From the NCBI GenBank assembly GCA_977017575.1, contig CDRNVI010000039.1, positions 124,001 through 188,000 of the forward strand: a stretch of DNA of 64,000 bases, read 5' to 3'. The notes beneath the pieces are model-generated. The model did not search any database, was not told the DNA's origin, and saw nothing but the letters and a program-made list of their open reading frames with translations. Position numbers and translations under genes: made by a program. This document shows positions 18,238-60,200 of this stretch, piece by piece. Source of the stretch: Paramoeba atlantica. Lineage: Eukaryota; Protista; Discosea. Position 1 is the first letter of the stretch. Every line of letters starts with the position of its first letter.

Positions 18238-21200
18238 TTATGATTTTAGACTACCGGAGTGCAATAGGTCCCTTAAAAGCTGCACTGATATGCGGTGACC
18301 TACCCAAAACCAAAGTTGATCAATTGCCTGTTCAAACAAAATTTCCAAACCCGAAACTAGAGTGCAAGTTGGATGATAGGCTCGAACAAAACTAAGAAAT
18401 GGAGTTAGTGCGGAACAGCAATCGTGCTCTTTCGAACGAATAATTTGTCCAGAATATAGAATTTGAGGGGGACATGAAGCACTCTGTGTGGCAGTGTACG
18501 AAAGATCCACCGCAAGACAATTTCCGGTTTGAAACAAACTATCTGGATAAGAAACAACAGCATGACCAGGAACTGTCGAAATCACGACGGAGGCCCCGCC
18601 AGAACTTTCTTGAAAAGAACAAAGAGAAAAATAATTAATTAAATTAAAATCCAAAATCGTTAAGCTTTCTCCAAGTCCCTGTGAAGTAAACCAAGATAGA
18701 AGCTGTTTCGCACGTTTTAATGAACGGTTCAAAATAAAAATTCGGGTGCAACCAAAGTGTAGTAAAGCGTAAACAGCTGACCGAGCCGAACCGCCAGCCC
18801 CCAAAACATATCCTCGTGTTTCATGAAAGGAATTCACAGGGCAAGATGATAATTCTGAGCATCTCTGAAGATGCCAGTGCCTTAGAAAACGGAAGATTGC
18901 CACCCAATCTGTATTTTCACCGTAGAATGCATCTGCCTCATCCACTGAACCATACTTACGAGCAATCGTATTGATGCACCCAATAATTTGTGCATGTGGG
19001 CTGACATTCCGTAACATTTGAAAGGCCTTTTCCTTGTGAGGTATAGTAATGGAAGCGCCACGAAATGTAGGATCTTCCAAAAGTTGTCCCCACGCCTGAT
19101 CAAAATCAGGACAGTCCACCACGTGATAACTGTGTGGCAAACCAAGAACATGGAACGCCGTGCGATGTAATGTAGGAGAATAAGAATAAGAAATTTGGTC
19201 GCCTACAACATAAAATGTACCGGGAAGTGTCAAGCCGAGCTGTGCTCGCAGCTGATTCATCGCGTGTAGGGTGAGTTGACCAGAGGCCGCGGGAAAAGGG
19301 AGCAACTCGTGGGTGACGGGAGAAAGTATTGTGCCCAGAATGCGTGAAAGAGCCCCGCCGGAGGCAGATGATACTGCCAAAAAAGGTAGACGGTTGTGTA
19401 GAACGGAGGACAGTAATTGTTGAAAACGGTACTGATCGGAGGGACGTGACAAGCCAAGAACAATTTTAACAATGTCACAGCCTGATTGGAGCAGTGAGAA
19501 AACAACGTCGAGGATGTTGAGTTCCGAGAAGGTGATGGAGGGGTCGTGATAGGACCCGACAATGAGAGTCACAAGGGGGAAATGTTGAGGGAGGGAGTAG
19601 GACTGCGCAAGAGAAAGGATGCAGAAAGCATCACGGTTACCATCGTCGAAACGTTGAGGAGATAAAGAAGCATGCTCGATATCGACGAATTCGCAACCAT
19701 AGCGTAGAGCAAGAGAGATCAATTTGGCGTAGTGCTCCGTTGTACCAACGAACTTGCCACCTTGTTGTACTGACCGTACAGTGAATAAAAGATAAAGGTC
19801 TGGGGTAAGAAAACGCAAATATTGAATTTCCTTGGCAACATTTTGAATGCCCGTCGCGCTGTCTTCTAGCAGGTCCGCTCGCAGCTCAACAACGTCGCAT
19901 CCAGCAACCAGTCGCGGAAAATCCCTTTTTAGATGTTGCTCTGACGAAAAATTGTAAGTGGGCAACGTAAGAGATAGCATGTGGGAGCTACGTAAACACT
20001 GAGAATCCCAACGCTTCGTGCTGGAAATAAAATTCAAAAACCGTTCCAAGATATTGACATTTGATTCAATGGAGAAATCGCCTTTGCATTTTACAGACGA
20101 ATTCTCAGACTTTGAAAAACCAAGTATCAAGTACTCATAAGATGTGGCCTTACGCATTTCAGACAGTGCTTTTTCGGAAAGGTGATTAATCCCGTAATCA
20201 TCTAATACAAGAGTACTACACGATAGTTGGCGCACGGGACGTAGTACACTCTCTAAAGTTGAATCAAAAAAGGAAACATTTGATGAAGTGTCTGCTGGAC
20301 GAAAAAGAAGAGAAGACCAAAGCTCAGAATCAAAAAGAGGCGGACATAGGATTAGAGTAACATTTTGTGTGACTTTTGGATGCTGGGCTGGTAGCTTCGC
20401 TAGCTCAGACTTAAAATTCAAAAATATGTTCGGCTCATTAGTCACTAGCTTCCATGAGGATTCTGATAAATCGAGTAAATTCCATCCTTGCGTTCTGTTA
20501 AGCTCACACAGCACTCGCACACACGCGCGCAAGTTTTTTAGATCAATAGAGTTGTTGTAAGGAACAAGATGTAGAACCGTATTTTGAGGCGTGCGGAATT
20601 CAGGGACTCGGCACGTCTTCATTCCTCGTGGTTTCCCAAGTGCGTCACCCAACCCAACGAAGGAAGACGACAAGGAAGATTCAATCGCATCCGTTCCACT
20701 CGCTTTGAGCGAAAGGTGAAAAATTCGGTTCAAGTGGTCCCAAAACTCCGGATAAGTTTTTTCTACACACCATGGGTCGACTATCGTAAGTCCCCCCGGA
20801 ATCCGACAGGACAATATTGCAAATGACATTGCGATGCGGTGATCGCCGTAGCAATAGATGGGCTGAGACTGCCTCATGGAGGCAAATGACTTACTGTGAA
20901 TATCTATCCCATCGTCAGTCTCCTGCGCGTGTACGCCTAGCTTACGCAGTTCCGTGACCATCGCTTGGATACGGTTACTCTCCTTCAAACGTTGAGAGGC
21001 AATTCCTGTGATACGATGCACCAAGCTCACGAAACCCTCATCATTGGATACCACGCTCCCTCTTGTTATTCCACACAACAGCACAGCGGCGGTCATAAAC
21101 GTATCCGAGAGTGCACCCATGTCGATACAAAATCCAGTATTCGACCGCAGACCGTTACCCCCGTTCGAGGCAACCACCACTTTCCTGGCCTCCATACGCA

Positions 21201-24042
21201 CCTCACACCCGAGGGGGCGCAACACGGTGGTCGCAAAGGCCAAATCACCCTGGGTGCGGGACGCGGTCCCCAGGCCCGGAATCACCACCGTGGGGCCACA
21301 GGGGTGAAGCACAGCGAGTGCCATCCAGTAGGATGCGCTGGTCGCGTCGGGCTCGATGAAATACGTCCCGGGGCTGTGGTACGCGCTGGGGGTGGGAATC
21401 GAGTAGGAAAGGGTTTGTGTGGGAGTGTCCCATGTGGGGGTGATGTCAAAACCAAAGTCACGCATCACAGAGAGTGTCATGTTTACGTAGGGAAGGGGAG
21501 GGGGAAGGGGAAGGGGTGTGGGGCTCGGGGTGTGGGGCTGTTGTTCGTCCGTACAGTGTTGTGCGAGGGTATTAAGATTCATAGAGGAAAGGGAGGAGGA
21601 AGTGTGCTGTAAAGGGTGGGAAAGTTTGCTTGAGAATCCAAAGGCGCGCAACAGAAGTGGAGATGGGGAAGGGGTGGTGTGAGGCTGACTGCACAGAAAA
21701 GGTGACACGATAAGAAGGGAGGAAAGGTATTGTGAGGATAAAGAAACATCAATGTCAAGGGTTCTTTGTAAGGACTCCAGTCGATGTTGTAAGTCGAATG
21801 AGGGATACATGCGCAAAGGAAAGTGTAGTCGGCTAGCGTCCAGTGGTTCGTTTGTTGAAGATGAATCGTATTCACCGTCTTCTAAACAAGAAAAGCGTGC
21901 GCCTAAGTCGTGCAACACTTTAAGTAAAGGGAAAATAGGACGGCATTGATTCATTCGTTGACATCCTGTGATTTGTGTGTAGCTGTAATTTTTGTTTTGC
22001 CCTTTGCGATGTTTCGAAGATTTAGTAGTCGTAGACATATCTCTGGAACAAATCTCTTCTCTGTAATCTTCATCAGAAGCAGCAACGCCCAACTCCCAGC
22101 TACTGAAATATAACAAACAAATGGGGAGTAAAAACCGAGACACGATGCCACTGTTGCCGACATAGAGATTTAGAGAACTTGAACTCATTGCGTTCATATT
22201 AAAGTCATCGAAAGACCAATCATGAGGTGAGTGTCCTTGGACAGTAATTGTGTCATCCAAAGAGTGAAAGCGGAAAGGAAAAGTGAAGACGCGTGAACAC
22301 TGTTCGGAATCTGCGCTGTTCTTTTTATCAGATTTCGGGGTAGAATGCTGCTGTAAAAAGTGGCTCAGTTTTTTCAAAGCCTCAATCATTAATAAAGTAT
22401 CAACACTGTACAATAAGCCGTGAAGAGTACATTTCGTGCCACCGAGGAATGCAATAGCCAGTGCGCGATTACTGATCGATTTGCTTCCTGGAGGTGTGAT
22501 GTGTATTTCCTTAGGAATAATGTCTTGACCTATGCCAACGTGCCATGCAGTGCAGTTTACAGACCAAAGAATTAAATCAAGAGAGACGTACCGCGGAGAA
22601 CTTTTACAACACATTCCGAGGCGTTCGAGAAGAACTACCTTGATTTCAGAATTTTGGTTTTTCTTATCACGATACAGAAATGAAATAAAGCGACTCAGGT
22701 TAGAATCGTGTTTCTTTTCCCTGAAGCTAAATTCCTCATAGTGGTCCTCAAAAAATAGCGAACTAGGTGAAGTGATCGGAAGCCCACACGAAGTCAAGAC
22801 ATGCTGCATACGCTGAAGCAAACTAGGCTGCAAAATACCAAGTCTACGTGAGATTCGTCCCTCGGCGACAAGCCCTATACTTACTGCTTCGCCGTGGAGT
22901 AAATAATCAGGAGAAGGAACCTGATCTGAATATGAGGTGTCAGTATAAGTTGAACCTAGACAGCCAAATTTAGCATTGCTTCGGCGCTCGTAACTGGAAT
23001 GGAGAAGGTCGTACGTATATTCTAAAGCGTGGCCAACTGTGTGGCCCAAATTTAACAAACAGCGAGACCCGTTCTGAGACTCTGTGAGATCACCTTGAAT
23101 CAACAACATTTTAAGAGAAATACTTTGGAGAATAATTTCATGCCAAACTGAGTCTGGAATACGTCTTGCACTCTCTGCACTACGAAGCGAAGGTGCCAAT
23201 AACTCAACTTGATCAAAAAAAGAAGTCTTGCCACAAAGCAAGGCAGATTTCACCACTTCAGCAAATCCGTTGCGAAGCTCACGAACCGAAAGTGTCCCCA
23301 AAAATGAGATCGAAACCAACGTCAGGTGCGCGGGATAGAACGACCCAAAAAGATTTTTTCCTGCAGCGCTATTAATCGCGGTCTTCCCTCCAACCGAACT
23401 ATCAACCATACTCAGTAAACTTGTTGGGACATAAACCCAGCGCACGCCACGAAGAAACGTGGACGCCACAAACCCGACCAGGTCCCCCACAACCCCACCC
23501 CCGAGGGCGACCAACACACACTGTCGGTCACAACGCGAGGCCACCAGAAAGTCTTCTAGAGCGTCACGAACCTGTCGACATTTTGCGCCCTCTCCTGCAG
23601 GAATACAAAACGTTTGTATCGGAGAGGTGCTGCGAGCGTTAATGCATTTATCCGATTGTGGTGAAACCAAAAACTCGTTAAGATACGCCTCGAGGGATTC
23701 TGTTACGGCAGGTTGCCAGATTTCGCCCACCCTGGTGTCCGAGATGAGCACATAGGATGAGGCGTCGGAAAAAAGAGAATGGAGGGCGTTTTGTAGAGAA
23801 GAGGTCGAAAAATGGGGGCCGCAATCCGAGGATGCATTTGTGTTGGTTGTTGTATCGGAACGAGATGGAAGGCACTGAAAAAGGTTACATTTGGGGTGCG
23901 AGTGAGAGCCGTAGTGAGTTTCAAGCGTTCTAGTTATTTTCTCTTTTGTGAGATAAACAATGGAACGGGTGTCTTTTCCATGTGTTTCCAACGTTGTATC
24001 AGAGTCTACCCATTTCCATCCCTTTTCACACTCGCAAAACAT
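18238..24042 (-). CDS. ARO1: Pentafunctional AROM protein (DHQ synthase - EPSP synthase - degenerate shikimate kinase - type I DHQ dehydratase - shikimate dehydrogenase)
   Basis: ALGGGVVGDLVGF, VDSSVGGKTAIN, LNLGHTVGHALE, LLHGEAV; PGSKSISNRAL, SSQYLSSLL, RLKESNRI, DHRIAMSF, KTYPEFW; VELRADLL, FTVRS..GGKF, SYHD; SPTLH, GASITIPHKE, NTD, GAGGSARS. First ATG at 24042. Confidence 0.96.
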   Translation of the reverse strand: MFCECEKGWKWVDSDTTLETHGKDTRSIVYLTKEKITRTLETHYGSHSHPKCNLFQCLPSRSDTTTNTNASSDCGPHFSTSSLQNALHSLFSDASSYVLISDTRVGEIWQPAVTESLEAYLNEFLVSPQSDKCINARSTSPIQTFCIPAGEGAKCRQVRDALEDFLVASRCDRQCVLVALGGGVVGDLVGFVASTFLRGVRWVYVPTSLLSMVDSSVGGKTAINSAAGKNLFGSFYPAHLTLVSISFLGTLSVRELRNGFAEVVKSALLCGKTSFFDQVELLAPSLRSAESARRIPDSVWHEIILQSISLKMLLIQGDLTESQNGSRCLLNLGHTVGHALEYTYDLLHSSYERRSNAKFGCLGSTYTDTSYSDQVPSPDYLLHGEAVSIGLVAEGRISRRLGILQPSLLQRMQHVLTSCGLPITSPSSLFFEDHYEEFSFREKKHDSNLSRFISFLYRDKKNQNSEIKVVLLERLGMCCKSSPRYVSLDLILWSVNCTAWHVGIGQDIIPKEIHITPPGSKSISNRALAIAFLGGTKCTLHGLLYSVDTLLMIEALKKLSHFLQQHSTPKSDKKNSADSEQCSRVFTFPFRFHSLDDTITVQGHSPHDWSFDDFNMNAMSSSSLNLYVGNSGIVSRFLLPICLLYFSSWELGVAASDEDYREEICSRDMSTTTKSSKHRKGQNKNYSYTQITGCQRMNQCRPIFPLLKVLHDLGARFSCLEDGEYDSSSTNEPLDASRLHFPLRMYPSFDLQHRLESLQRTLDIDVSLSSQYLSSLLIVSPFLCSQPHTTPSPSPLLLRAFGFSSKLSHPLQHTSSSLSSMNLNTLAQHCTDEQQPHTPSPTPLPLPPPLPYVNMTLSVMRDFGFDITPTWDTPTQTLSYSIPTPSAYHSPGTYFIEPDATSASYWMALAVLHPCGPTVVIPGLGTASRTQGDLAFATTVLRPLGCEVRMEARKVVVASNGGNGLRSNTGFCIDMGALSDTFMTAAVLLCGITRGSVVSNDEGFVSLVHRITGIASQRLKESNRIQAMVTELRKLGVHAQETDDGIDIHSKSFASMRQSQPIYCYGDHRIAMSFAILSCRIPGGLTIVDPWCVEKTYPEFWDHLNRIFHLSLKASGTDAIESSLSSSFVGLGDALGKPRGMKTCRVPEFRTPQNTVLHLVPYNNSIDLKNLRACVRVLCELNRTQGWNLLDLSESSWKLVTNEPNIFLNFKSELAKLPAQHPKVTQNVTLILCPPLFDSELWSSLLFRPADTSSNVSFFDSTLESVLRPVRQLSCSTLVLDDYGINHLSEKALSEMRKATSYEYLILGFSKSENSSVKCKGDFSIESNVNILERFLNFISSTKRWDSQCLRSSHMLSLTLPTYNFSSEQHLKRDFPRLVAGCDVVELRADLLEDSATGIQNVAKEIQYLRFLTPDLYLLFTVRSVQQGGKFVGTTEHYAKLISLALRYGCEFVDIEHASLSPQRFDDGNRDAFCILSLAQSYSLPQHFPLVTLIVGSYHDPSITFSELNILDVVFSLLQSGCDIVKIVLGLSRPSDQYRFQQLLSSVLHNRLPFLAVSSASGGALSRILGTILSPVTHELLPFPAASGQLTLHAMNQLRAQLGLTLPGTFYVVGDQISYSYSPTLHRTAFHVLGLPHSYHVVDCPDFDQAWGQLLEDPTFRGASITIPHKEKAFQMLRNVSPHAQIIGCINTIARKYGSVDEADAFYGENTDWVAIFRFLRHWHLQRCSELSSCPVNSFHETRGYVLGAGGSARSAVYALLHFGCTRIFILNRSLKRAKQLLSWFTSQGLGESLTILDFNLINYFSLCSFQESSGGASVVISTVPGHAVVSYPDSLFQTGNCLAVDLSYTATQSASCPPQILYSGQIIRSKEHDCCSALTPFLSFVRAYHPTCTLVSGLEILFEQAIDQLWFWVGHRISVQLLRDLLHSGSLKS
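21040..21730. other. GC-skew island (C-rich left arm, GC core, G-rich right arm) inside AROM
   Basis: C/A-rich 21040-21270, GC-rich core, then G-tract-rich 21380-21730 on the + strand. Confidence 0.75.
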
Positions 24043-24379
24043 TTTCAGCAAAAATCAGTCATGAGCTCTGCAACGCGTAAATAGTTTCTAAGGAGGGAAA
24101 AAACATTTTCTATATCCAGAGGAATCATTACTTTAAAAAGTCGAAGCTATGGAGTTGTAAAACTATCAAACAAATATTGTCATGTTGCCAAAAGCCTAAA
24201 AGTAGAAAAAAACATTAAAATGTGTTGTTTAAGCCGAATGCAGATGCAAAATATTAATGATTAGCCTTTCAAAAGAAAATCAATCAAGCGAATAAAAATG
24301 AAACGATGCAAGTTCCATATTCCCGTAACCTTATTCCCGTACACTCACAAATGTAGTAAATGTGTAACTCACCAATGCA

Positions 24380-25930
24380 TTACCCGAAAATCAACCCCTT
24401 CATCCACCCCCTTTCACTACCCCCCAACCCTCACTCCTCCACCGACCTCCGCGCGAGCTGCCTCACCTTCCTCTCATACCCCCTCCGGTCCTCCCTCCAC
24501 TGCCTCGCGGCCTCCACATTCGCCGGGCTCTCCCCGTTCGGCGCATCCAGCATCGACAGCACACTGAGCAGTATGCTCCCGACGGTGTGGACCGGGGACC
24601 AGCGCTCCTTGGCGCTCTCGTACCCGAACGCCCCCTCCCCCGGGCTGTGGAGGATACTCACGCAGACCTCCCCGCTGGGGTAGATGTTGGGGTGCCACAT
24701 GGGGGTGAGGAAGACCATGGTCGGGGGGGCGTTCGGGTAGGTCCGGGGGAAGGACAGCGTGGCACGGAACAGGCCCCCGTCGTGGGGGGTGTCGTGGGGG
24801 CCGACGAGCAGGACGTCCCACAGGAAGGGGTTGGCGTCGTCCCGGAGACCGGCGGAGAGGCCGGGGAGGGGGTGGCGCTGGAGGTCACGGAGCTGGGAGA
24901 GCAGGAGGAGGGTGGCGTGACGGGTGGTGGGGTTGGGGGGGAGGGCAGGGGGAGGGGGGGTAGAGGTACGCGTAGGGGCAGAGGGGTGGGTAGGGGTAGG
25001 GGTAGAGGGGTGGGTAGGGGTAGAGGTGTGGGTACGCGTAGTGGTAGATGTGTGGGTACGAGTAGTGGTAGAGGGGTTGGTAGGGGTAGAGGTGTGGGTA
25101 CGCGTAGTGGTAGATGTGTGGGTACGAGTAGTGGTAGAGGGGTTGGTAGGGGTAGATGTGTGGGTACGCGTAGTGGTAGAGGGGTTGGTAGAGGTAGGGG
25201 TAGAGGTGTGGGTACGCGTAGTGGTAGGGGGGTTGGTAGGGGTAGATGTGTGGGTACGCGTAGTGGTAGAGGGGTTGGTAGAGGTAGGGGTAGATGTGTG
25301 GGTACGCGTAGTGGTAGGGGGGTTGGTAGGGGTAGATGGGTTGGTTGGAGTAGTGGTAGAGGTGTTGGTAGGGGTAGTGGTAGAGGGGTCGGTAGAGGTA
25401 GGGGTAGATGTGTTGGTAAGAGTAGTGGTAGAGGGGTTGGTAGAGGTAGGGGTAGATGTGTGGGTAGGAGTAGTGGTAGAGGGGTTGGTAGAGGTAGGGG
25501 TAGATGTGTTGGTAAGAGTAGTGGTAGAGGGGTTGATAGGAGTAGTGGTAGCTGAAGGGGTAGCAGTGTTAGTAGGGGCAGTTGTAGTGGGAGACGTGGT
25601 GGTAGTGGTCGGGGTAGTGGTCGACGTGTTCGTACGGTCAGTGGTAGGTGTGTTGGTACGAGTACGGGTAGCTGAAGGGGTAACGGGGTTGATAGTGATG
25701 GAAAAGGGGGTAGAGGTGTTGGTACCGGTATTGGTAGAGGTGATATTAGGGGTAGGAGTGGATGTGTTAGTACGGGTAGGGGTAGAGGTGTGGGGGAGAG
25801 AGCATTGGGGGAGGGAAGAAGGAGAAGTGGTATTGTCAGGGTGGCGGTTGGGTGAGGACGTGACAAGAGGACGTGAAGCACGGGAGCAGGTAGGAGGGTG
25901 GGGCAGGGGTGGGGTAGTCATCGCTTGGGT
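24380..25930. other. GC-skew island spanning the E2 gene
   Basis: C-tracts 24380-24680 (partly 3' UTR), switch near 24700, G-tracts with almost no C from 24900-25930. Confidence 0.85.
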
Positions 25931-26005
25931 AGAGTTTGCGTGCAGGTTGGATAGGCGTTGAGCAGAGTGGGTGTTGTTTTTTGTGGAAGTTCTTTTGCGG
26001 GGCAT
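24431..26005 (-). CDS. Ubiquitin-conjugating enzyme E2 (Ubc7/UBE2G-Cdc34 type) with long Thr/Pro-rich N-terminal repeat
   Basis: [30 protein letters not shown] (active Cys), acidic loop [21 protein letters not shown]. Confidence 0.9.
24950..25560. repeat. Degenerate coding minisatellite (~27-48-bp units; [11 protein letters not shown](ST)NPS)
   Basis: Repeated ggtagaggggttggtag...gtgtgggtacgcgtagt units. Confidence 0.9.
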
Positions 26006-26095
26006 GGGTGACTGGAAAAGACAAAAGGAAATGAAAAATGGCTAAGTGAGGAATGGCAAGAGAAGTATTTCAGATAAACTATTTTAGACGAAAAA

Positions 26096-28066
26096 TTAAT
26101 CAAGAAAAAAAATATTACAGAACGCGCACTGAGATAATGTCCCAATACGTTTGAATATTTTCATTGATTTAGTGTTGTGAGAAAGCCTGGAAACCCTTTT
26201 TGAAGATAAGATGGCATATGTTTTAGTGGAGGGGCGAAGCGTTTCCTTTGTGCGTTTTCCTTTGCGATATTTTGTGAGGCGCAGGCGTCGCATAATTCCG
26301 TTTACTTTTGCTTGGGCTTTCTGACGTAACTTTTGTACTTTTTGTTCGTAAGGTCGTCGCTCGTGTCTATCATGACATCTCCACTCTTGCGTCACAATAG
26401 GTAGTCGAGTGATTGTGGAGGATATTTTCGAATGCTTATCTTTTCTATTTATTGCTTTCCGAAAAGCGTTCATAAAAAGTGCAAAAGACGAGATCCGGAC
26501 GTGCTTAAGTGCAACCAAGTCTTTGGGACTGATCCCCGGTAGATGAGTCCGTTTTGCTTGTTGATATCTCTTGCGATGCATCTGAACTCTAGTGGAGTAT
26601 TCTTGTTTCACATCGTCAGGCAAGGATTGATATGTGTTTCGCGATCGAATAAACTTTGAGGAAGAAGGTTCCAAAACAGCTGAGAATATAGGATAAGTTC
26701 TGCGTAAAAAAAGATTGAAGCCTGTCCGTGAAAGATGACCCTGGTGTGCTTTCGCAGAGAGTAAGAGTTCGCGCACCTGCTTGCTAGATTGGACGTTAGG
26801 GCCCACTGCTTCAGTTTCCGCACATAATTCGGGTTCCATAGAAAGCAAATCGTGAGGAACAGAAAACTGATTTCGCCCGTCTAAGGATGAAGGTATTGAT
26901 AATAATGAAGTTTCCCTCTGTTTTCGACTTTCGTAGAACGTAGCATTGGAAGAGAGTTTGGTACGTATGATGGAATGGGTTACAAAATCAGCGTAACGGA
27001 CAGAAAAATGTGTCACTGATTCCACACGTTGTTTCGTGCTTCCTGGCAAGAGAAAGGCCACAGCAGCAGAAATCGAAAAATAGAGAAAAACACTCATGTT
27101 CGCTAATAACCTTCTGAATCTCAAAAGTAACTGAGAGTGAAAGTTTTGCAGACATGCGTACGAAATGGTATAAAGAAAACAGAGTGCGGAAGCCGCAAAA
27201 TGTAAGGCCCTCATTAACCAAAGCTTTAAGAACCTTTGACCTTTGGATAAAATATCTGTAGTGGTACAGGAGATTCTTCTTGCAGCGAGCGGTAGAAAGC
27301 ACCTCAAATTTCGTAAATGAAAAAAGGTGACTGCAGAACACAAAATATCAGCCATGAAAAATGTTGAGCCATTGACTATTGGAAGCGTCGTAAGACTAGC
27401 CACAGTACGATAACGTGAGGGTTGGAAAGAGGGTGCTGGAGAAGAAAATAATATAATTTTTGGAAACATGTAGCCGGGATTTATTTTTCCTCTAGAATAA
27501 TGTCTATCAAACTTGTGTGCATATTCATGAAAAGCGAATATAGAAACCTTGTGCAATGCTGGAAAACGGGCAGCATGAACACCCGTACGCCAAGGAACCG
27601 GGAGTTGTTCCAAGCGGTAAGGTTTATTTGCACGAAAGAACGAGCGTGTAAAGCACGTTTGTTGCCTAGAACTGGCACACGGAAATTTTGATAGTTGCCA
27701 AAATGTGCGATTACACTGAACAGTTTTAAGCTCAGGGTATATTTCACAATACTTGTGATCTTTGATATCGTATCGTCCTGTAGAATTCCCACATAAGTCA
27801 TGCTGAATAATTGAATAAAAGTTGATCGACGCGGAAGGAGAAGAAATAGATGCAGGCCGAAGTGTTGGTAATTTTTCCAAATCAAATTGCTTGCAAATCA
27901 GCGACGAGCAATCCAAAAAAGATTTTTTTATGGGCATGCGAAGATTTGCCTCGTGTTCCCGGATGACTCTATCCCATGATTGGAGTGCCATATTACGTGA
28001 AACGGTACCAAGGGGACAAAATGAAGAGCAAGATCTGATTTTAGGGACGCATTCACTAACTGGCAT
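26096..28066 (-). CDS. Protein with two C-terminal HMG-box-like repeats and a basic tail (true start uncertain)
   Basis: TGFNLFLR...YQSLPDDVKQEY and SSFALFM...QEWRCHDRHERRPYEQK match HMG-box spacing. Confidence 0.55.
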   Translation of the reverse strand: MPVSECVPKIRSCSSFCPLGTVSRNMALQSWDRVIREHEANLRMPIKKSFLDCSSLICKQFDLEKLPTLRPASISSPSASINFYSIIQHDLCGNSTGRYDIKDHKYCEIYPELKTVQCNRTFWQLSKFPCASSRQQTCFTRSFFRANKPYRLEQLPVPWRTGVHAARFPALHKVSIFAFHEYAHKFDRHYSRGKINPGYMFPKIILFSSPAPSFQPSRYRTVASLTTLPIVNGSTFFMADILCSAVTFFHLRNLRCFLPLAARRISCTTTDILSKGQRFLKLWLMRALHFAASALCFLYTISYACLQNFHSQLLLRFRRLLANMSVFLYFSISAAVAFLLPGSTKQRVESVTHFSVRYADFVTHSIIRTKLSSNATFYESRKQRETSLLSIPSSLDGRNQFSVPHDLLSMEPELCAETEAVGPNVQSSKQVRELLLSAKAHQGHLSRTGFNLFLRRTYPIFSAVLEPSSSKFIRSRNTYQSLPDDVKQEYSTRVQMHRKRYQQAKRTHLPGISPKDLVALKHVRISSFALFMNAFRKAINRKDKHSKISSTITRLPIVTQEWRCHDRHERRPYEQKVQKLRQKAQAKVNGIMRRLRLTKYRKGKRTKETLRPSTKTYAILSSKRVSRLSHNTKSMKIFKRIGTLSQCAFCNIFFLD

Positions 28067-30694: not shown

Positions 30695-31378
30695 TTAAAC
30701 TGTGTAGGCCAAGTGAGAACCTTTAATTTCAAGACCATTCTCAGCGATTTTCAAGTAGACAAGGGAGGGAGGAAATTTGTTGAGGTCAAGCTCTCCAGTG
30801 AGATGATTGAATTGAATTTGTAAATTGCTCAACGTACCAGGTAGTGCGCCAACTTTTATATCACCTGAAAAGCGATTTCTGTATAACCACAACCACTGCA
30901 AGCCAGGAGGAAGGCGTGTCAGATCCATCTCTCCCTCCAGTCGGTTCGTATCAGCACACAGAGTTTCCACTGTCAAGGGGAACTGAGTTAAATCTAAAGA
31001 ACCGGAGAATATATTGGAATTGATCCAGAAATCACGGAGATTCGGAGGAAGCTCCTGCGGTGTGAGCTCGTGACCCAACGCATTGGATTGGAGGCGTAGA
31101 AAGACGACGCTCTGTGGGAGCCAGGACCACGTCACATTACCACTAAGTCGTTGAGAGCCCCATGAAATGCTATCAACAAGGCCTGCACGGTCCACAGAGA
31201 CGCCCAACCAAGAATCCACTGTTTGTGTGTCGTTCCATGAGAAGTGTAGATTCTGCACATGTTGAAGGAATAACGAAAGCGCTACTTCGGGAGAGAGAAG
31301 GGTGCGGCGGAATTTTTGAGGTTTTCGAGAGGATGAAACATCCGCCGAGAAAACCGGCCCAACAAAAGGGAGGAACAT
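30695..31378 (-). CDS. LRR protein (member 2)
   Basis: Same N-cap (W.....W.GV...G.V..I.W....L.G) and LP..L LRRs. Confidence 0.88.
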   Translation of the reverse strand: MFLPFVGPVFSADVSSSRKPQKFRRTLLSPEVALSLFLQHVQNLHFSWNDTQTVDSWLGVSVDRAGLVDSISWGSQRLSGNVTWSWLPQSVVFLRLQSNALGHELTPQELPPNLRDFWINSNIFSGSLDLTQFPLTVETLCADTNRLEGEMDLTRLPPGLQWLWLYRNRFSGDIKVGALPGTLSNLQIQFNHLTGELDLNKFPPSLVYLKIAENGLEIKGSHLAYTV

Positions 31379-33426: not shown

Positions 33427-33552
33427 AACTCAAAAGCTGAAGAACATTTACCCACAACCGCTAATACCAGTACACCACAAATATTGCTTACTATAGTTCC
33501 AGGAGGAGAAATAATAATATTTGTTATAATATCTGTTGCCCAGGCAACATAC

Positions 33553-44551: not shown

Positions 44552-44697
44552 TATTGAAAAAAAAATCGTAAAAATATATTGCTAATGAAGGACCAAATTT
44601 CCGAGAAATCGTATAAACTAAATTTATAATCATAAGAAATGTATACGTACATTCCTTATACGTACAATGTATACGTACAATCCTTTGAGTGGGTCTT

Positions 44698-45381: not shown

Positions 45382-45546
45382 TGTAGATACTACAAATATG
45401 CCACGGAAAAAAAATAATGTACTTCAAAAACAATTAAGATCCACAAAGTCATTTACTATCAGGTGATGCAACTTCCTCTGTTGTCACAAAGTTTATGATC
45501 TTCATACTTCTAAAGAGTCTATAGAGGTAAACGTTGTGTTTATCTT

Positions 45547-47295
45547 TTAAACGTCGTCATTTACTGTATCCGACGATAGTCGCTGATATGCAAGACTGCT
45601 CGACAATAGTTTAGAAGGGGAACCCTCCGACTCTATAATGCCTCGTGAAAGAACGTAAATGTAATCTGCGGATCGGAGAAACTGCAACTGATGGGTAATG
45701 ATTATTACTGTGCGTCCTTCTTGGACAAAAGAGTCCACAGAGTCAAAAATAATAGCAGCGGCGGCCGCATCGAGACCCTTAGTTGGTTCATCTAGTACAA
45801 TAATTGGTGCATCCGACAAAAAAGTGCGAGCAAGAGCAAATCTTTGAATTTGTCCGCCACTTAATGGCGTTTCGCCTTCACATTGAAACGACGTGTGAAG
45901 TCCTTGTGGTAGCGCCTCTATTACGTCGTCTAATGCAGCTCTGGATGCAGCTTGAAGGATTCTCTTTTCGGAGACTGAAGGGGAAGAACCATATGCAATA
46001 TTTTCCCATAGAGTACCATCCAGGAGTCCGGCATCTTGTTCACATAGAGCTATATCTACACGGCGCGAAACGGTGCCAGCCGTTGGTAAAAGGAGCGACG
46101 TCATCAATCGCGCAAGTGTAGTTTTCCCTTGTCCACTATAACCCACGATGCCATAAAGTTTACCAGGATAAAATGTCATGGAGACGTCACGTGGACCGTA
46201 CATGTAAGTAACTCCTTGAAGGGTAAGGTACGGAAGTTCAGAAACTATCCGTTCCTCCGTTATGTGATCTGATTTCTCCGTCGTATCAGCCATACGTTTC
46301 CCTACGATCGATAATGACGAATCCAAGGTATGCTCGTCAAGGTATTGAAGCAATCCTTCTGTGGAACCCATTGCAATCCTTACTTTGTTTATTTCTCGGG
46401 ACAAGTCGCCTGCGTGATCCAACCATCGTTTGGCGTAAAAGAAAAATAGCAAAATATCTCCCGTGGTTAGTACTCCTAAGTCTTTATAGTGGCGACCGGC
46501 GGCTACAAGCAAGACATACAGAATATTGTTAAAACCAAAATTTGCAGCGCTACTGCTGTGTAGTTTCCAATCCATCTCCGCAGCAGAATGCCGAAGCATA
46601 GTTAGACATGATTTTAACTGCGTGTCTACGGAACATTGCAATGAAAAAAGTCGAATGGTTGATTGCTTGGAAACTGCGTGGGCAAGCTTCTTATTTATTA
46701 TGGCCTGCATGCGTTGTACATTCCGACTTTTAACTGAAAAGTCAGTGCCGAAAAAACCAGATGCCCATCGGTTCAGCACCGCGAAGACAACAAGAAGAAA
46801 AGATAATTGAGGAGAGATAGAAAGTAAACCCAATGTGAAGGCAACAAGAAACACAACACTCTGATAGAAATCAGTAAGGAAGCCAGTAAAGCACTCCCTG
46901 ACATGTTGGGCTCCTTGAGTGATGTTAGATGCGAAAATTTCGGGAGACACCTCAATAACATCTTTAAATGAGCGGTCGTTTAGCGTTTTCAACGATGCTT
47001 CGCAAAGATGGCTCTCAAGTCGGCGCGCCCCCACAGCCGAAGTATAGTGGCCGAAGCAGGAAACAATGTGATAGATAAGAAATAAAAAACACATTGTTCC
47101 TACGTGTGCTGTTGGATCTATTGACTCACGCTCCGAAAGATCACGCAAGAGAAGAGGTAACGAAATGTTTATGACAGCTCCAACGGTTATGCAAAACAAA
47201 GACAGGAGCGCAGCACCACGGTGGAGATATACATATGGTCGTAATTTGGAGTATGCGCTCCACAACTGTTTCCATTGGTCGGGAAAATTCAGCAT
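45547..47295 (-). CDS. ABC half-transporter (ABCB-like, TMD-NBD)
   Basis: Hydrophobic N-terminal half; GYSGQGKTT, LSGGQIQR, IIVLDEPT.GLD, IITHQL. Confidence 0.92.
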   Translation of the reverse strand: MLNFPDQWKQLWSAYSKLRPYVYLHRGAALLSLFCITVGAVINISLPLLLRDLSERESIDPTAHVGTMCFLFLIYHIVSCFGHYTSAVGARRLESHLCEASLKTLNDRSFKDVIEVSPEIFASNITQGAQHVRECFTGFLTDFYQSVVFLVAFTLGLLSISPQLSFLLVVFAVLNRWASGFFGTDFSVKSRNVQRMQAIINKKLAHAVSKQSTIRLFSLQCSVDTQLKSCLTMLRHSAAEMDWKLHSSSAANFGFNNILYVLLVAAGRHYKDLGVLTTGDILLFFFYAKRWLDHAGDLSREINKVRIAMGSTEGLLQYLDEHTLDSSLSIVGKRMADTTEKSDHITEERIVSELPYLTLQGVTYMYGPRDVSMTFYPGKLYGIVGYSGQGKTTLARLMTSLLLPTAGTVSRRVDIALCEQDAGLLDGTLWENIAYGSSPSVSEKRILQAASRAALDDVIEALPQGLHTSFQCEGETPLSGGQIQRFALARTFLSDAPIIVLDEPTKGLDAAAAAIIFDSVDSFVQEGRTVIIITHQLQFLRSADYIYVLSRGIIESEGSPSKLLSSSLAYQRLSSDTVNDDV

Positions 47296-48657: not shown

Positions 48658-51600
48658 CTAACTAGAAAGGCAAGAATTTAATCGGCCGTGCCTCGTAGTT
48701 GGGTGCAGCTGGCGCGAAACATACACCATGAGCATACCAGAAAGAAGAATGCGGGCAACATTGTGAGGATGTGGATCACACAATGAAAAAAGGAATTGGA
48801 CGAAAGAAAGTGTCCATGCCGTTTTTACAGTCTGCTTTTCTTTACGTTTTGCTAACCACACCTCATCAGGGGTCCTTCGATTTTCTAAGCTACTTAAATT
48901 AGAAAAAAAAGAAGAAAAAAATTCAAAAGATAAGAATGTCCACGATCCCTGTAAGGGAACCTCCCTAGAGCTATTATCTTCAGAATATCGTACGTCATAC
49001 TCTTTTTGGCCTAACAACTCGTGTTCAAGAGAAAAGTTTAAGCCGCTTTGCAAGCGACGAGGCGTGCTACGATATTGAACCTCATTTTTGTATTGAATAT
49101 CGGCGTCACGTCTTGAAAAACACATCGATGTCCCATCTACCGTGTCCTCCACATCCTGGGCGTCCTTTACCGGACAGCGTACATCTTCTTCCATAAAAGA
49201 AGCGACCCCATCGTTTGCGCATTCGACGCTTACCTCCTCAGAAACAATCAACCATGGAGTGACGACCATTGTGTCGTGTCCTCGTACCCTTGCGTTGCCC
49301 ATAAAGGTGACAACCCCTTGGCTGTACACCACAGCACCCGGGTGTGGCGACATGTTATCATTGAATATCCCGCTGTCTACCCCTAGAAGCGTGTGATGAT
49401 CGGGTGTGTACAGTGCCCCTCCATGGCGCAAGGCAGTGTTTCCATCCACATGGGCTCCCGCGAGCGACAACGAGGCACTTGCCATGCTGGAGTAGGCCAT
49501 GCCCCCGCCACAACGCGTGCCCTCGTTACGGAGAAGCGAGCAGTCATGTAAGTGTCCATGGACGTTGTTGAGTAACATGCCCCCGGATTCACCACGATTG
49601 GCCTCGAACCGCATGTGGCTCGCGTGGAGATAGAGTACGGCATGCGGACAGTGCTGCACGTGTAGGAGAAGCCCACCAACGTGTTGTGGCATGGGAAGAG
49701 AGATGTCGGTGTCAGAGTGCCTTTCCTGGTTTTCAGTGTCGTGTTTGTTGTGAGAAAGTTGCGTTATCTGGTTTGTATTGTGAGGTACAAAGGTTTTACT
49801 CCGCCTTAACGGACGCGGTACAGCAAGGTTACGCAAAAAGAAAAGGTTGTGAAGTTCGTTTGTGTATCTAAACCCTTGAGGAGGTATTTGCTGTATAATC
49901 CCAAGACCTCCAAAAAGGTAACATGGTGGATGCTGTAACTGACTTCTTTCAGAGACTATTGAAGTGTTCGGTAGCGAGATGAGATTATCATATTCGCATT
50001 CATTTGATTCGAAAATAGAGTCTGAAAGATACAGTTGCGGTTGCTGCCACGAAGGCTCCAGCATGAAACTTGGCGTTCGTGGTATAAGACGTGGCGAACA
50101 ACGCACAATAGCATGCGTTAACAAATCCGCGTTCGCGTTTGCCTGAATAGATAGATCTTGAACGTGTGTTTTGTGTCGTAACTCCCATGAGGATGCCTCT
50201 ACAGGATGAAGTACGCCTGTTTGCGAACTACACATCAATACAGAAGAAAATATCAAGTTTTGAGAATTGAATTCTCCGACACACCAACGTCGTTCGGTTA
50301 TGTCGTAGAAAATGCTCAAACGAAAGAAATTTTGTAATTCTGCTTCATCAAGTACGAAAACCTTTCTACGCGCAAACACTGTTCCGTGGTCTACGTATAC
50401 GCCATTCACATGGGATGAATTCTGCGGTAGATTACGTATTTCTACCGAACTACACGAGATTTTCCCCGTGGCTCTTAGTATTACATTCGAGTACATAGCG
50501 TTTACGTCCGTGCTATTGTTTTGAGACAATAGAGACAAAGTGTCCGTGCTGAGAAGGACGCCTGATTTTGTCTCGCGTGAAGCAGCTTGCGTTTGCTTAC
50601 AAGTAGCAGGGAAATGACTGAAAAATAGTAAGTTGGCGTTTTCCAATGAAGTGTGATCTATATGAAGTTGAGACAAGACAGAATGCCGTATTCTAAAAGA
50701 TTCTTCTTGCTGATAAAAACGTGCATGAGCATCGTAGAACGGTGCGGGAGCTTTGGTATACAATCCAAAAGGAATTGGTTGTGTAGTATTACGTGATAAA
50801 AAATCATTAGCTGACCGATCAGAAAGGAACTGCAGATCCTCCAATGAGATTTCGGAACACCCATCAATGCAGGAAATGGAAATCATCTGGTCACCCTTTT
50901 TCCATTTACGTTGAGAGGAATCCCAATAGCTCCACATGCCATGCCATTGGGTGGGGTCTGGCATACGACAGGGAAGCGACCGAATTATTTTTTCACACGT
51001 TTTATCGCTCATCGTAAGCTGGGAATTCCATGGATTTGTGGGAGATACAATCCATTCTTGAGACCCGTAGCAAAAATAAAGATAGAATTCAGCCCCTTTG
51101 TCGTGTTGCACACCGCTACTATGTGTCGTTGTCGCGTGGCTTTTATAGTACACAGGGTAGCCATTCCACTGGTTCTTCCTACGGACGTATACACCTTCAC
51201 AAGAGAGTAATGGATACTCACCGAAAGTTCTTTGCGAAATACTGAGACCGTATATGGAAACCTGAAGAGCTTTACATGCACTTTCCACTTCATAGTGATG
51301 CAACCCCATTTGAGGTAACTTTTCTTCTTTCCAACTTTCGGTATCAAGGTAGCGCCAATTTGAAAGGTTGCATGTTAAGGGGTGGGCGGACAAAGTTGTG
51401 CTTCCTGATATAGCTTTGCCACAGACTCGAGGACGACTTGGGTTCCTCTTGTCCAGAAGTTCTTCTAGTGCGGTATGGGGAAAAGGTTCGTAGAGTCCCT
51501 CAGATTCAGATGTTACCTCTTGATTTGCGCGATCCTGAACAAATACTTCTGGAATAGCATAACTGCGAACTTGTGTTATTCCTTTTTGGGAAACATCGGC

Positions 51601-55209: not shown

Positions 55210-55519
55210 TCGAGTCAGAACATTGATAAATGGAACAATAAAAAGAAAAAAAACTACAAGCCCTTTAGGAAATAAAACTAGAATACTGGCTGTCCACCTA
55301 AAATGATAAAATTAACAGTAAGCAAACTTACTTTCTACCTTAAGCGCAATTCTCTTCTTAAGGTTATGTTACGAAAAGGGTGTCGAAAAACACGCCATCT
55401 AAGGCCCAACTATCATCTAGCCCTGTGTGCCGTCAACCAGCCTTCACGGCCAACACAGCGATATGCGTGATGATTGCATGTCTAATTTGTATTATTCTAC
55501 TCAAGAACGGACAAAAGAC

Positions 55520-56860
55520 TCATGACGACGGGTGTGTCCCCTCTCCATGAGAAGGAGAGAACTGCAGCGCCGCGGGACACCTCGCCGTACAAAACTCCAC
55601 CAGCTGCAACCGAAACCCCACATTCTCTAAAATATAATCCGACCCGTTACTCCCCCGTACCCACCGGCACGCCGTCACTAAATCCACCCCACACCGCTCC
55701 ACCAGATACGCCACACACAGAATCGCACTCCGGTTCACCCCTCCAAGACAATGCACCAGCACCACCCCAGGATTCCCCCCCTCCCCCCCCTCCCCCCCTC
55801 CCCCCGCCCTGACCTCATCCACCAACCCCGCAAACCCGTCGTAGTGGTACACCAGGATCGGGTACTCCCCGTCATCCAGCGTGTGCACCCCACGGTAGGC
55901 GATCCCCAGCGCGGGGTACACCGCGCGGCCCCCGAGCGCGCTGGTGTCCCCCGCGGCGACATTCACCACGTGGGAGATGCCGTGCGCGGTGAGCTGCGCC
56001 CCACACAGCGCAGCCTCCTCCCCGCTGAGGCACAGGAACGGGGTGACGGGGCGGATCACCGGGGGGCGCAGGGTGCGGCGCAGGGCGGAGCCCACGTCGA
56101 GCTCCGCGGCCAGGCGACGGACCAGGTCGCCGTGCTGCCGGGTGAGGGGGACGGGGGTGACGCAGGAGAAGAGGGCGTGGTCGGGGGGAGTCGCGGTGGT
56201 GGTGGTCGCGGTGGTGGTGGGGTAGACCGGGGGACGGGGGTGAGACACGGGGGTCGCGTGGAGGGGGGGGTGGCCGTGGGGGTAGAGCGTGGAGGGGGTA
56301 GGGGTGGGGAGGGGGTAGGGGGTTGTGGTGGTGGTGGTGGTGGTCGTAGAGGTTGTGTGGGGATGAGGGAGTACTGTGGTGTGGGGGTTGTTGGTGTGAG
56401 TTGTGGGGGTGGGGGAGGTGGGGGCGTGGAGGTTGTGGAGGAAGGGAGGGGAGAGGTCGGTGGTGGTGGTGGGGGGTAGGGAATGGGAAGGGAGAGTAAG
56501 GTGTGTGGAACGGTCGGGTAGGGGGGAGTGGTAGGGGGAGAGGGAGGAGGAGGAGGAGGAGGTGGGGATTTCGGAGGGAAAGGTGTCGAGTCGGGTTGGG
56601 GGGAGACTTGGGAGAGAGGTGGAGGAGAGGGATCGTAGAGGGTGGCAGGGGGTGGGGGGTACGGCGAGGGGGGAGGAGGTAAAGGAGGGACGAGGGCCGA
56701 AAGGGGTGCTACCGTCGTGATGTTCCGGAGAGCCGTCGGCCATCTCACACAAGGCGGCCATCTCACACATAGGGGTGTGGGAAAGGGAGTCGAGAGGGAA
56801 GTCTTGGTTCACGTTGCGTGCTTGCAGGGGAATGCGATGTAGGGGTGAAATGTCGTCCAT
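55520..56860 (-). CDS. Dual-specificity phosphatase with Pro/Thr-rich N-terminus
   Basis: VTPFLCLSG, GISHVVNVA, LDDG, VHCLGGVNRSA (Cx5R), ILENVGF. First in-frame ATG at 56860; the frame is open to 57067. Confidence 0.88.
   Translation of the reverse strand: MDDISPLHRIPLQARNVNQDFPLDSLSHTPMCEMAALCEMADGSPEHHDGSTPFGPRPSFTSSPLAVPPTPCHPLRSLSSTSLPSLPPTRLDTFPSEIPTSSSSSSLSPYHSPLPDRSTHLTLPSHSLPPTTTTDLSPPFLHNLHAPTSPTPTTHTNNPHTTVLPHPHTTSTTTTTTTTTPYPLPTPTPSTLYPHGHPPLHATPVSHPRPPVYPTTTATTTTATPPDHALFSCVTPVPLTRQHGDLVRRLAAELDVGSALRRTLRPPVIRPVTPFLCLSGEEAALCGAQLTAHGISHVVNVAAGDTSALGGRAVYPALGIAYRGVHTLDDGEYPILVYHYDGFAGLVDEVRAGGGGEGGEGGNPGVVLVHCLGGVNRSAILCVAYLVERCGVDLVTACRWVRGSNGSDYILENVGFRLQLVEFCTARCPAALQFSPSHGEGTHPSS
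55560..56800. other. GC-skew island over the second DSP
   Basis: C homopolymer tracts 55560-55850, GC core 55850-56150, G-tracts 56150-56800. Confidence 0.88.
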
Positions 56861-57261
56861 GACGTGGTGAGGAAAGTTACCACATGCGTGTTGGGTGGTG
56901 AGAGATAAGCATAGCGCAAGGAGTACGAAATATGAAAAGGAATCTTTACAGTTGGTTCTAAAAAAGAAGCTAAGTAGGTCGCGCACAAGATCTACACGTT
57001 GCAATTTGCGATCTCTTAAGATAATGTTTTCGCAAAAAATATTGAGAAAAATGACTTGTGTATGCAACCCATTTATGAAATCACATGTTTTTCGCCCTAA
57101 TCTATATTTATGTTTTAGTTGGACTAAAATGTTGAAGCAAATAGCAATCTACGTACAGTGAAAGACGCAATGGAATACAAATATTTACTCATGTCGTATT
57201 ATTTCGTATAAAACAGCTCTGCAAGTTCCTTTGAAACGCATTCGCTTCTATTCTGACTTCT

Positions 57262-60200
57262 CTAAGCCATAATCATTTTCTCTCGAATAGTGGCATGAAG
57301 AAGACATAGAAAATCCACATAAGAAGTCTCTCCACAGTTGCGATCTTCCACCATGCGTTGCCACCACAAGGACTCCAGCGAATCTACACCCTCCCGGATT
57401 AACTCTAATCGGGGCAATATGTTACCACGGGTGGCTCGGATTTCATTCCACGCGGCACGAAGCCGAGGATTCACCTCCTCGCGAAGCATCCATGCGTCGG
57501 TAATTGTCTCTGAGGAGGGAAGCACCGAAATTCCAAACAGCTGTTGTAAACATTCCGATGTGACCTGATTTCCCACCCACAAATAGGTCTTCCCAAACGC
57601 CAAGTCGTCACACAGATAAACCCCATCGCTGCGAATTCGCTCCGCGTAGAGTTGCGTCCACGGGGGCATGACACAGTTCGCAAAAGGGGAAGGTGGTACG
57701 GAATTGTCCGCAAAGTCGGGAGAGGATAGCAGCGGAAACGTGCCTACGGAGGGAGTGCTCAACAAATTCGTCAAGTCGTACGTTCGAGGATAGAGGTAGA
57801 GAAGAAGCTGGGAGGGAGGAAGAGCGAGAAGTCGGTGTAAATCGCGTGCACGGTCGTCCACTCGCACATCTGTTTGTGAAGGTTGCCGAAGAGCAAAGGT
57901 TTTCAAACTAAGGTATAGAAAGAGGGGAAGAAGTTTTAGATTTTCCGGGAGGATGAGCTGCCCGGCGTGCTGACTGGAGGAACAATAACGGCGGTAGGAA
58001 AATAACATCTCCGTCACTTGCTGATTCATAGCCTCTCGTGCCTTTGTTAGACCCTTTGCAACTACGGCTCGCAGGGAGCGGTGAAGGTAACATGCCAAGG
58101 TGGCCTCCAAGTCACACCCTTTAAACAGCTCAGGAATTTGTGCCACGACGGGGACGCGAAGAGAATGCACGCGCAGCCGCCGGTCCCCTCGCGGTGTGGT
58201 GTAAAGCAGCGCGGCTTGAAGGTACCACTCTGTTGGCGACTCAAGGCGTCCCTCGTGCTCGAATTCAACAAGAAAACTTTGGTTCGGATACAGCGCCGCG
58301 AGGTCCATGTCTTTGGCGTCCTGGGAGAGGTAGTGTCCACTGTAGCTTGCCACACGGGTCCCGTTGGACACTCGTACGCGTAGGATCGCACCATGCGCCG
58401 AGGGCTGGGCAAGTATTTCAGTAAGTTCATGCTTCAATCGTGAGCTATCTCGACTGGGAACGAAGTGCGACATTTCCAAAATGTTACCAGAGGAGAGATG
58501 AGAGAGTTGGGACAGTGTGGGAAGTTCCACAAAGCTTGACGAAAAATTGATCCAGTCGAAGGATATTTGCCGTTTTGCAGCTTCTGTCGCAATGGTGGTC
58601 CAAAAACCTTCACGAGGAAGGAAGGCCTCGCGATCATTATTAACACCGATGAGTTTGTTTTCTTCCCGAGGTGTCAGGGCACCAAGTCCAGTGTTACATC
58701 CCTGAGTAGTGGAAACGATTACCCGACCTCCTGTGTCATGCAATATGAGTTGTGCACATCGCACTGCTGCGCCCAGAGCAGAACCCCGTTCAGTACAGTG
58801 AGCGGCATAGACTGGTAAATCTTGAACAAAACGAAGTGCCACGTCAATTTCACGCTCCAATGAGAGCCAACAAAGCTGATTGAACGGAAGAGGGACAAAC
58901 GGGTTGTCTGGCTCATTCATGCAAACTTGCGCCGCACGTCGGGACGTGGCATCAGTTCGCATGACTCGAAAGTCATAGAAATGAACGCTCGATGCGAATG
59001 TGACAAACCCCACATAAACCTCCGGACTGGTTTGCGCCGCCACACGAAGCGCCTGTGTCAATGCCTCAACCATTGCGCCAAGATACCCGGACGTTGCATC
59101 ACCCACCCCACACGAAATATCCAACACAAACACCACATGAAGCGGGTAGGTCGCCGCCGGGGCCGTCTTCCCCACTCCCACCACCCCCTCACTCTGCCCA
59201 CGCCGCAGGGCATAATCCGACAACCCCTCGACATTATACTCCACACTCCCGACCGTGATCTCGGCCCGGGTGCCGTAGTCCATCCGTCGCCCCGTCGCGG
59301 GGTCCAGCCCGCACCCATACCCTTGCGGGACCTCGTTGTCAATGCGACAGTACGTGCACCCCCACCTCCGGCCTTGCTCGGTGAACGTGCTGTGGCAGGA
59401 GACGTAGGCCCGGCAGCGTCGGCAGCGCACGGGGCCGTGCCCGGGGACCGGGAGCACGACGGGCACGGGGCCCTCTCCGGGGCCCGGGGGTGCCAGCGGG
59501 GTGAGTACGGCAGCCCAGGGGAGCTGGGCGCCCTCGAGGACTTTGCGCTCGAGCGGGGCGCGGTAGCAGGAGAGGCGCACGTAGCGGGGGCTGGCGTTGC
59601 CGTCGTCCTGGGTGAGGGAGGAGGAGCCGGCAGGGGGGGGGAGGGTGTCGGCGGCGGCGGTGCGGTAGAACGCACGGGTGCCGTTGCTGGGGAGGAGGTC
59701 CCGGGAGGGGTTGGGGACTTGGGTGGGGTCGATACGGCGGGAGGTGGAGGGGGGGCGGGAGGTGGGGGAGGTGGGGAGGGCAGAGGTGGAAGAAGGAGAA
59801 GAGGAGGGAAGGGGGGCGTTGGGGGGAAGGGAGGACAGGATCTCGGGGGGGTATTGTGGGGTTGGGGGATTGGGGTAGGGTTGATGGGTTGTGGGGTGGG
59901 GTTGGGGGATCGGGGTGTCGGGCTGGTGGGAAGGTGGCATGGGGTGGGGTGGGTGTGCGGTGATGGAGGGAGTGGGTTGGGACAAATTAGAGAAGGACGG
60001 GGTGTTCGTTGAGGCTGAGATTTGCGGTGGTGCGCTGAAATGTGTACCTGTTGGAGCAGACGTCTGCCACGAGGGTGTAGTCTGTGGCAGATCGACTTGT
60101 GGGGTTGCTTGGAACGGAGCAGATGCGGGCGTAAGATTTTGGGGTGTGGTGAGACCTGACGCGCCACCGGGAGAGGCGATTTGGTGCACAGGAGGGTGTG

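Follow-up and report, generated by a model that had tools for sequence, protein, structure and literature searches.

Islands of C-to-G strand asymmetry with constant polarity inside the genes of a co-directional array on a Paramoeba atlantica assembly contig

The window analyzed here, 64,000 nt of contig CDRNVI010000039.1 (positions 124,001-188,000, forward strand) from the Paramoeba atlantica assembly GCA_977017575.1, carries discrete islands in which the sense strand of a gene is rich in C upstream and rich in G downstream of a sharp flip point. These islands are best explained as footprints of a directional substitution bias, which acts on the DNA and not on the protein, and which overrides synonymous sites, the flanks in untranslated regions (UTRs) and, in part, conserved protein domains. 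The window has an overall GC content of ~45% and consists of a transposon-rich part (1-18 kb) and a single co-directional array of 24 intronless genes, all on the minus strand (18-64 kb). About a third of the genes carry islands, and assignment with Pfam bears out the claim of an initial annotation of this DNA that these genes are unrelated in function, namely AROM, a ubiquitin-conjugating enzyme (UBC), an LRR-family protein, V-ATPase subunit c, a Plus-3/RING protein, a dual-specificity phosphatase and Sec24.

The polarity of the islands is constant. Strong flips were called where (G-C)/250 nt reached at least 0.12 in opposite sense on either side, the C-to-G polarity having its C excess on the left and its G excess on the right. 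The window contains eight such C-to-G flips (Table 1) and no G-to-C flip, and relaxing the threshold to 0.10 gives nine C-to-G vs one G-to-C, while block shuffling yields both polarities in equal numbers. Two more C-to-G flips, and again no G-to-C flip, come from L007, a second locus (20.8 kb) of this assembly, for a combined count of 10 vs 0, and no flip of this strength occurs in the transposon-rich 1-18 kb of the window. The initial annotation had described recurring islands with a C-rich arm, a GC-rich core and a G-rich arm in unchanging order, which these counts (8:0 in the window, 2:0 in L007) confirm. It had also placed the islands every few kb; a regular spacing is not supported, with intervals of 1.0-15 kb between them. 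It had further set two sites apart as weaker, of which that at ~23.6 kb proved strong by the flip test and that at ~49.5 kb indeed weak. The islands are 0.7-1.7 kb long, their core GC is 0.55-0.75 vs 0.42 in the genic background, and their amplitudes form a continuum from weak to extreme. Contigs of public runs and an independent assembly show the same islands, which are hence not assembly artifacts.

The signal is carried by positions that leave the protein unchanged. Pooled across the eight islands, four-fold degenerate sites shift from a background of A 0.25, C 0.20, G 0.18 and T 0.36 to C 0.5-0.64 and G 0.06-0.16 in the upstream arm, and to G 0.53-0.62 with C down to 0.10 in the downstream arm. 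A and T decrease in both arms, so that the changes amount to "any base to G" on whichever strand leads away from the flip in the 5' to 3' direction, and the GC-rich core is the zone in which the two gradients overlap. The GC content at third codon positions (GC3) reaches 0.92-0.97 at the core, and the sense-strand third-position skew in the UBC, phosphatase, RING and LRR genes runs from -1.0 to ~+0.8. The skew returns to background within 0.3-0.8 kb of the flip, and islands in the interior of genes peak beside the flip and decay outward from it.

The arms also extend 60-130 nt into non-coding flanks. On the + strand, the flank 3' of the UBC gene (24367-24429) has C 0.49 and G 0.03, while the flanks at 34709-34772 and 41344-41411 have G 0.56 with C 0.03 and G 0.37 with C 0.03, respectively, compared with C 0.17 and G 0.19 in pooled intergenic DNA. 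The initial annotation had proposed a DNA-level element of fixed polarity with arms that enter UTRs at 24380-24430, 34710-34780 and 41344-41370, and had named as counter-evidence a signal that vanishes at synonymous and UTR positions; the signal persists at both, and the four-fold sites and flanks that carry it support the proposal. The two flanks at 34709-34772 and 41344-41411 lie just upstream of their genes, where the sense strand is a near-pure C/T tract, in one case with ten C's immediately before the ATG. Such tracts may double as the polypyrimidine tract for trans-splicing, a signal with which the apparent "arm" in the 5' flank is confounded.

Paralogs provide an internal control for the same bias, as one of the ten LRR paralogs in the window is rewritten and nine are not. 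At residues identical between the rewritten gene and a paralog, the rewritten gene has G or C in place of A or T 21-32 times, and the reverse 4-8 times, in each of the nine comparisons. Its commonest third base is C over codons 41-80, then G over codons 121-200. The ten paralogs (190-390 aa, window 28542-54376) are interspersed with housekeeping genes in the one co-directional array, and share a conserved N-terminal Cys...Trp...Cys motif. At the protein level, C arms are enriched in Pro (2.6x), Thr (2.6x) and His (1.8x), and G arms in Gly (2.3x), Val (1.7x), Ala (1.5x) and Glu (1.3x). Within the Sec24 island, Gly, Ala, Arg and Pro make up 0.49 of residues vs 0.28 in orthologs over the same alignment columns, with parity outside the island.

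Table 1. Islands and related features of the window (GC3, C3 and G3: GC, C and G at third codon positions; strong flips at the 0.12 threshold).
Feature	Positions	Flip	Strong flip called	Composition and remarks
Island in AROM, EPSP-synthase domain	21000-21800	21210-21251	21251	~2.8 kb from start codon; + strand skew -0.35 to +0.69; GC up to 0.70; sense C3 0.50, then G3 0.40
Weaker island, AROM 5' end	23300-24000	~23600	23619	Skew -0.16/+0.16; C3 0.38, then G3 0.34
Island over entire UBC gene	24350-26050	24658-24673, within UQ_con domain	24658	Spans Thr/Pro-rich repeat extension through 80 nt beyond stop codon; UQ_con domain GC3 0.92-0.97; third-position skew of the island -1.0 to +0.27
Island over one LRR-family gene (33965-34708) and ~130 nt upstream	34000-34840	34455	34455	
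Island over V-ATPase c subunit gene (coding sequence 38174-38659) and 5' leader	38200-38960	38553-38581	38553	
Island over Plus-3/RING gene (40405-41343) and ~70 nt upstream	40500-41411	40865-40939	40939	GC3 up to 0.95; third-position skew -0.59 to +0.78
Weak candidate island in 1544-aa gene	49250-49850	~49530		Skew -0.07/+0.13, sub-threshold; C3 0.40, G3 0.28
Island over dual-specificity phosphatase gene (55520-57067)	55450-57000	56024	56024	GC3 0.92-0.95; third-position skew -1.0 to +0.85
Island deep in Sec24, 2.25-3.45 kb from start codon	59016-60216	59380, within zinc finger	59380	C3 up to 0.88, then G3 0.58
Not an island: Sec24 Pro/Gln/Ser-rich N-terminus	60400-62466			C3 and G3 both ~0.2; skew from codon positions 1 and 2 only

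Each island lies within one gene plus at most ~130-300 nt of flank, contrary to the earlier description of islands that ignore gene borders. Five islands each cover a whole short gene and stop ~30-300 nt from its coding ends, two lie at the 5' end of a gene (AROM and the first island of L007) and one at the 3' end (the second island of L007). All four genes with a strong 5' C arm also have a strong 3' G arm, compared with 1 of 20 among the other genes. A reading of the arms as two sides of an intergenic origin, i.e., the 3' G arm of one gene together with the 5' C arm of the next, was rejected, as arms are never paired across an intergenic spacer, which argues against a center in the spacers. 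A weaker gene-scale gradient is found in three comparison loci (L002, L003 and L004) from the ENA assemblies ERZ25071330 and ERZ25074155, which represent related genomes with the same LRR family. Median GC3 is 0.47-0.55 there, higher than in the window, and their 63 kb hold no extreme island. The third-position skew climbs between the first and the last third of genes, whichever strand they lie on: the rise averages +0.14, has a positive sign in 28 of 40 genes (Wilcoxon p = 0.0017) and is correlated with GC3 (rho 0.47). This gradient resembles the gene-scale skew of unicellular fungi (PMC3315797), taken up below, of which the islands of the window look like an extreme, patchy version.

The islands have no sequence in common. 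Comparison of island against island by blastn returned nothing beyond the tandem repeat inside the UBC gene and trivial matches of low complexity, no alignment was found between the two arms of any island that would indicate an inverted repeat or hairpin, and the flip points have no motif beyond C- and G-runs. A mobile element or dispersed repeat is not supported as the source, as neither sequence nor terminal repeats are shared. The logic of CpG islands spared from methylation was rejected, since CpG is depleted nowhere, with observed/expected ratios of 0.89 in the cores, 0.97 in the genic background and 1.02 in the transposon-rich DNA. The potential G-quadruplex (G4) motifs within 18-64 kb are strictly oriented: each of the 18 on the + strand has a flip 65-1238 nt to its left, and each of the five on the - strand has one 44-259 nt to its right. 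Runs of at least four G show modest extra clustering relative to phase-preserving shuffles (165 vs 123 +/- 8), while runs of at least six G are not in excess over the same shuffles.

Several features of individual genes accompany the islands. The N-terminal extension of the UBC protein (24965-25551) is a hierarchical tandem repeat with periods of 18, 24, 42, 66 and 90 and Thr/Pro/Ser-rich units; it lies entirely inside the C arm of the island, and repeat expansion has therefore lengthened arm and gene alike. The Thr/Pro repeat hierarchy is irregular and the sample small, and it was dropped as a source for polarizing changes. GC-rich islands create spurious + strand antisense open reading frames of 240-360 aa (24587-25961, 55751-56479 and 58927-60012) and break automatic gene calls, as for the 312-aa RING gene, which was called as just 140 aa in an ENA assembly. 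The AROM gene (18238-24051) is of the fungal pentafunctional type, set in a kinetoplastid-like gene array, and its shikimate-kinase domain gave no Pfam match above threshold.

The closest relatives of the Sec24 domain are trypanosomatid proteins (36% identity), and the LRR family matches a protein of Perkinsela sp., so that the organism is a deep-branching kinetoplastid from the Perkinsela lineage. A closely related species by which to polarize substitutions was not found in the databases, the 36% of Sec24 being the best match and the next AROM relative standing at 32% identity. The spliced-leader sequence of Perkinsela (from PMC5601477) is absent from the window. A look for transcript contigs returned none for Sec24 and, for the V-ATPase c and LRR island genes, genomic contigs only; a JGI contig for another LRR gene is colinear with the genome and without a spliced leader.

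Geometry helps to discriminate between causes. The G-rich strand is at once the non-template strand for transcription that departs from the flip, the template of the lagging strand at a bidirectional origin and the one re-synthesized after a break. A substitution bias linked to transcription or R-loops is the driver that we tentatively favor, short of holding it probable, and we infer all three of its parts, namely the transcription link, the enzymology and the self-reinforcement. The strand that runs outward would be the non-template strand for RNA synthesis departing from the flip point; exposed in transcription bubbles or R-loops, it would acquire lesions that are fixed as G, possibly through bypass of abasic sites by insertion of C opposite, or through strand-biased repair. 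As G-runs favor R-loops and G-quadruplexes, the process could reinforce itself, and would therefore become extreme in some genes and be absent from their neighbors. The signal at synonymous and non-coding sites, the polarity, the orientation of the G4 motifs, the pairing of arms within genes and the lack of any island in the 18 kb of transposon-rich DNA speak for such a bias, as do the gene-scale gradient of the comparison loci and a geometry like that of the G/T-rich coding strands at transcription start regions of Trypanosoma brucei (PMC5579346). The more specific proposal that the flip points are dispersed zones of bidirectional RNA polymerase II entry and R-loop formation within coding sequence, written by a self-reinforcing loop of R-loops and mutation, is unlikely, if coherent with the same pattern.

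A number of observations weigh against the transcription-linked bias. Within a co-directional array, the C arm would need antisense transcription or a second mutational regime, and biased gene conversion is the more typical source of a GC3 of 0.95. Two of the islands sit 2-3 kb into long genes (AROM and Sec24), and the 17 island-free genes of the array show no trend from 5' C to 3' G (mean change -0.02, p = 0.85). Placement of all eight islands within single genes would arise at random with P = 0.13 (window only), which is not significant, hence the confinement of the islands to genes is suggestive, not proven. The outward strand has G 0.40, T 0.22 and A 0.20, so that T does not appear enriched, unlike in the GT-rich promoters of T. 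brucei, and in one possible RNA run, none of the four contigs that fall on the window (166-251 nt) lies over an island.

Recombination offers a different origin for the same geometry, in that double-strand-break hot spots could build the core by GC-biased gene conversion and the C/G asymmetry by strand-specific repair synthesis that proceeds outward. The GC3 peaks of 0.92-0.97, ~1 kb wide, and the shift toward Gly, Ala, Arg and Pro in a conserved domain fit this explanation, strands re-synthesized after a break would run 5' to 3' outward and thus share the geometry of the G-rich strands, and Perkinsela retains Spo11, DMC1 and HOP1 (PMC5601477). Polymorphism points both ways. A second ENA contig of the AROM/UBC region (L005; window 17940-27512) is 98.6% identical and probably represents the other allele; its differences, which are unpolarised, are enriched in the two AROM islands (18 in 1550 nt vs 14 in 4260 nt of the remaining AROM gene). 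However, strain differences are not in excess in the islands at 54.5-60.4 kb or at 30.7-46.8 kb, and a contig that covers window 30722-46760 (L001) is identical apart from a cluster of differences confined to 31.7-34.3 kb. Biased conversion by itself is symmetric between strands, and both arms lie inside one gene. At break hot spots in human, the side left single-stranded (the forward strand to the left of the break) shows changes of the types C>N and A>N, with C>G and A>G among them (PMC7615360), and damage of this kind would in time make the left arm G-rich, which is opposite to the islands. On balance, recombination is possible but should be considered a minority explanation, second to the transcription-linked bias.

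The remaining explanations were weighed against the same evidence. That the islands are functional elements, either internal bidirectional promoters or G4/R-loop landmarks, maintained by selection rather than left as a passive footprint, is improbable. The strict orientation of the G4 motifs and the excess of runs of at least four G are in its favor, and there is a precedent in T. brucei, where G/T-rich elements suffice for directional transcription and deposition of H2A.Z (PMC5579346). Yet the flips have no common motif, amplitudes are continuous, T does not appear enriched, the longer runs of at least six G are not in excess, and the position of the islands in conserved catalytic and zinc-finger domains is costly for the protein. 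Replication initiation zones, with two forks leaving leading/lagging-strand skew, are more doubtful still and have a low probability. The islands do show the switch from negative to positive GC skew that is the classic signature of origins in Escherichia coli and human (PMC2817419), but their skew decays in 0.3-0.8 kb instead of spanning a replicon, their arms pair within genes and not across spacers, and none occurs in the 18 kb of non-genic DNA. Moreover, stranded nascent-strand sequencing places most T. brucei origins between genes, with G4 on the + strand upstream and on the - strand downstream of the center (PMC13179062), whereas the islands are intragenic and their G4 orientation is the opposite. 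The functions that the initial annotation had put forward thus fare unequally: outward transcription, with arms prone to R-loops and G4, fits the polarity, while the origin and the break hot spot each face opposing evidence. Selection on protein composition or codon usage has almost no standing left, being refuted for the eight strong islands by the four-fold sites and the UTR flanks. The arms do encode tracts of Pro/Thr/Ser/His and of Gly/Val/Ala/Glu, but the signal is strongest at four-fold sites and in UTR flanks, the preferred synonymous base changes from C to G in mid-gene, and nine paralogs of the rewritten LRR gene are unaffected. A truly protein-level skew does exist at 60.4-62.5 kb, where the + strand G-richness was rejected as an island, as it reflects the Pro/Gln/Ser-rich N-terminus of Sec24 with normal third positions.

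A tie of the bias to transcription or R-loops would point to gene-level events in a lineage taken to transcribe its genes solely as long polycistronic units, and it would also provide a natural case of mutation that overrides selection on conserved domains, as flip points sit in the zinc finger of Sec24, the catalytic domain of the ubiquitin-conjugating enzyme (E2) and the EPSP-synthase domain. Whatever the cause, the sharp flips are markers, readable from sequence, of the start of a two-sided DNA process, and if they were initiation zones, such zones could be mapped from sequence alone, with conserved proteins rewritten by the loop. In practical terms, gene callers fail at the islands, and analyses of the affected proteins that rest on composition or on substitution rates are distorted. 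No description of these islands was found in the literature searched.

Related phenomena are known from several systems, each of which shares a part of the pattern. Mammalian bidirectional CpG-island promoters have a GC-rich core, a switch from C-rich to G-rich sequence, outward G-rich non-template strands and R-loops. The islands resemble them in combining a GC-rich core with a C-to-G skew switch, but lie in coding sequence, and in a background that is not depleted of CpG (0.89 in the cores vs 0.97). In T. brucei, transcription start regions have G/T-rich coding strands and dispersed, GT-rich promoters (PMC5579346), with which the islands share the kinetoplastid setting, the G-runs on the strand oriented with transcription and the lack of a defined motif. 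However, the T. brucei regions are broad (>1 kb), also rich in T and located at the starts of polycistronic units (PMC5579346), whereas the islands appear enriched in G only, and are GC-rich and intragenic. All eight are inside genes of one co-directional array, away from strand switches and from the start of any polycistronic unit. Local GC3 peaks of 1-2 kb, as expected of a hot spot of biased gene conversion, are present at the islands, which, like the sites of runaway GC evolution in gerbils (PMC7403616), combine extreme local GC3 with conserved proteins pushed toward residues of GC-rich codons. The islands differ in that C and G are split to either side of a midpoint. GC-biased gene conversion is not known to part the two bases in this way.

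The closest parallel is the gene-linked skew with 5' C and 3' G described in unicellular fungi (PMC3315797). As in the fungal genes, the sense strand of the five short genes with islands starts with a C bias and ends with a G bias, the bias shows at four-fold sites, alters the usage of amino acids and reaches the flanks, A and T are little involved, and just a fraction of genes is clearly affected. Unlike the fungal skew, the islands reach third-position skews of -1.0 and +0.85 coupled to a GC3 of 0.95, and form discrete patches of ~1 kb that can lie deep in long genes and be absent from neighboring ones; they are not an average property of genes that is strongest at gene ends, as island-free genes are flat, and they occur in a kinetoplastid with co-directional gene arrays.

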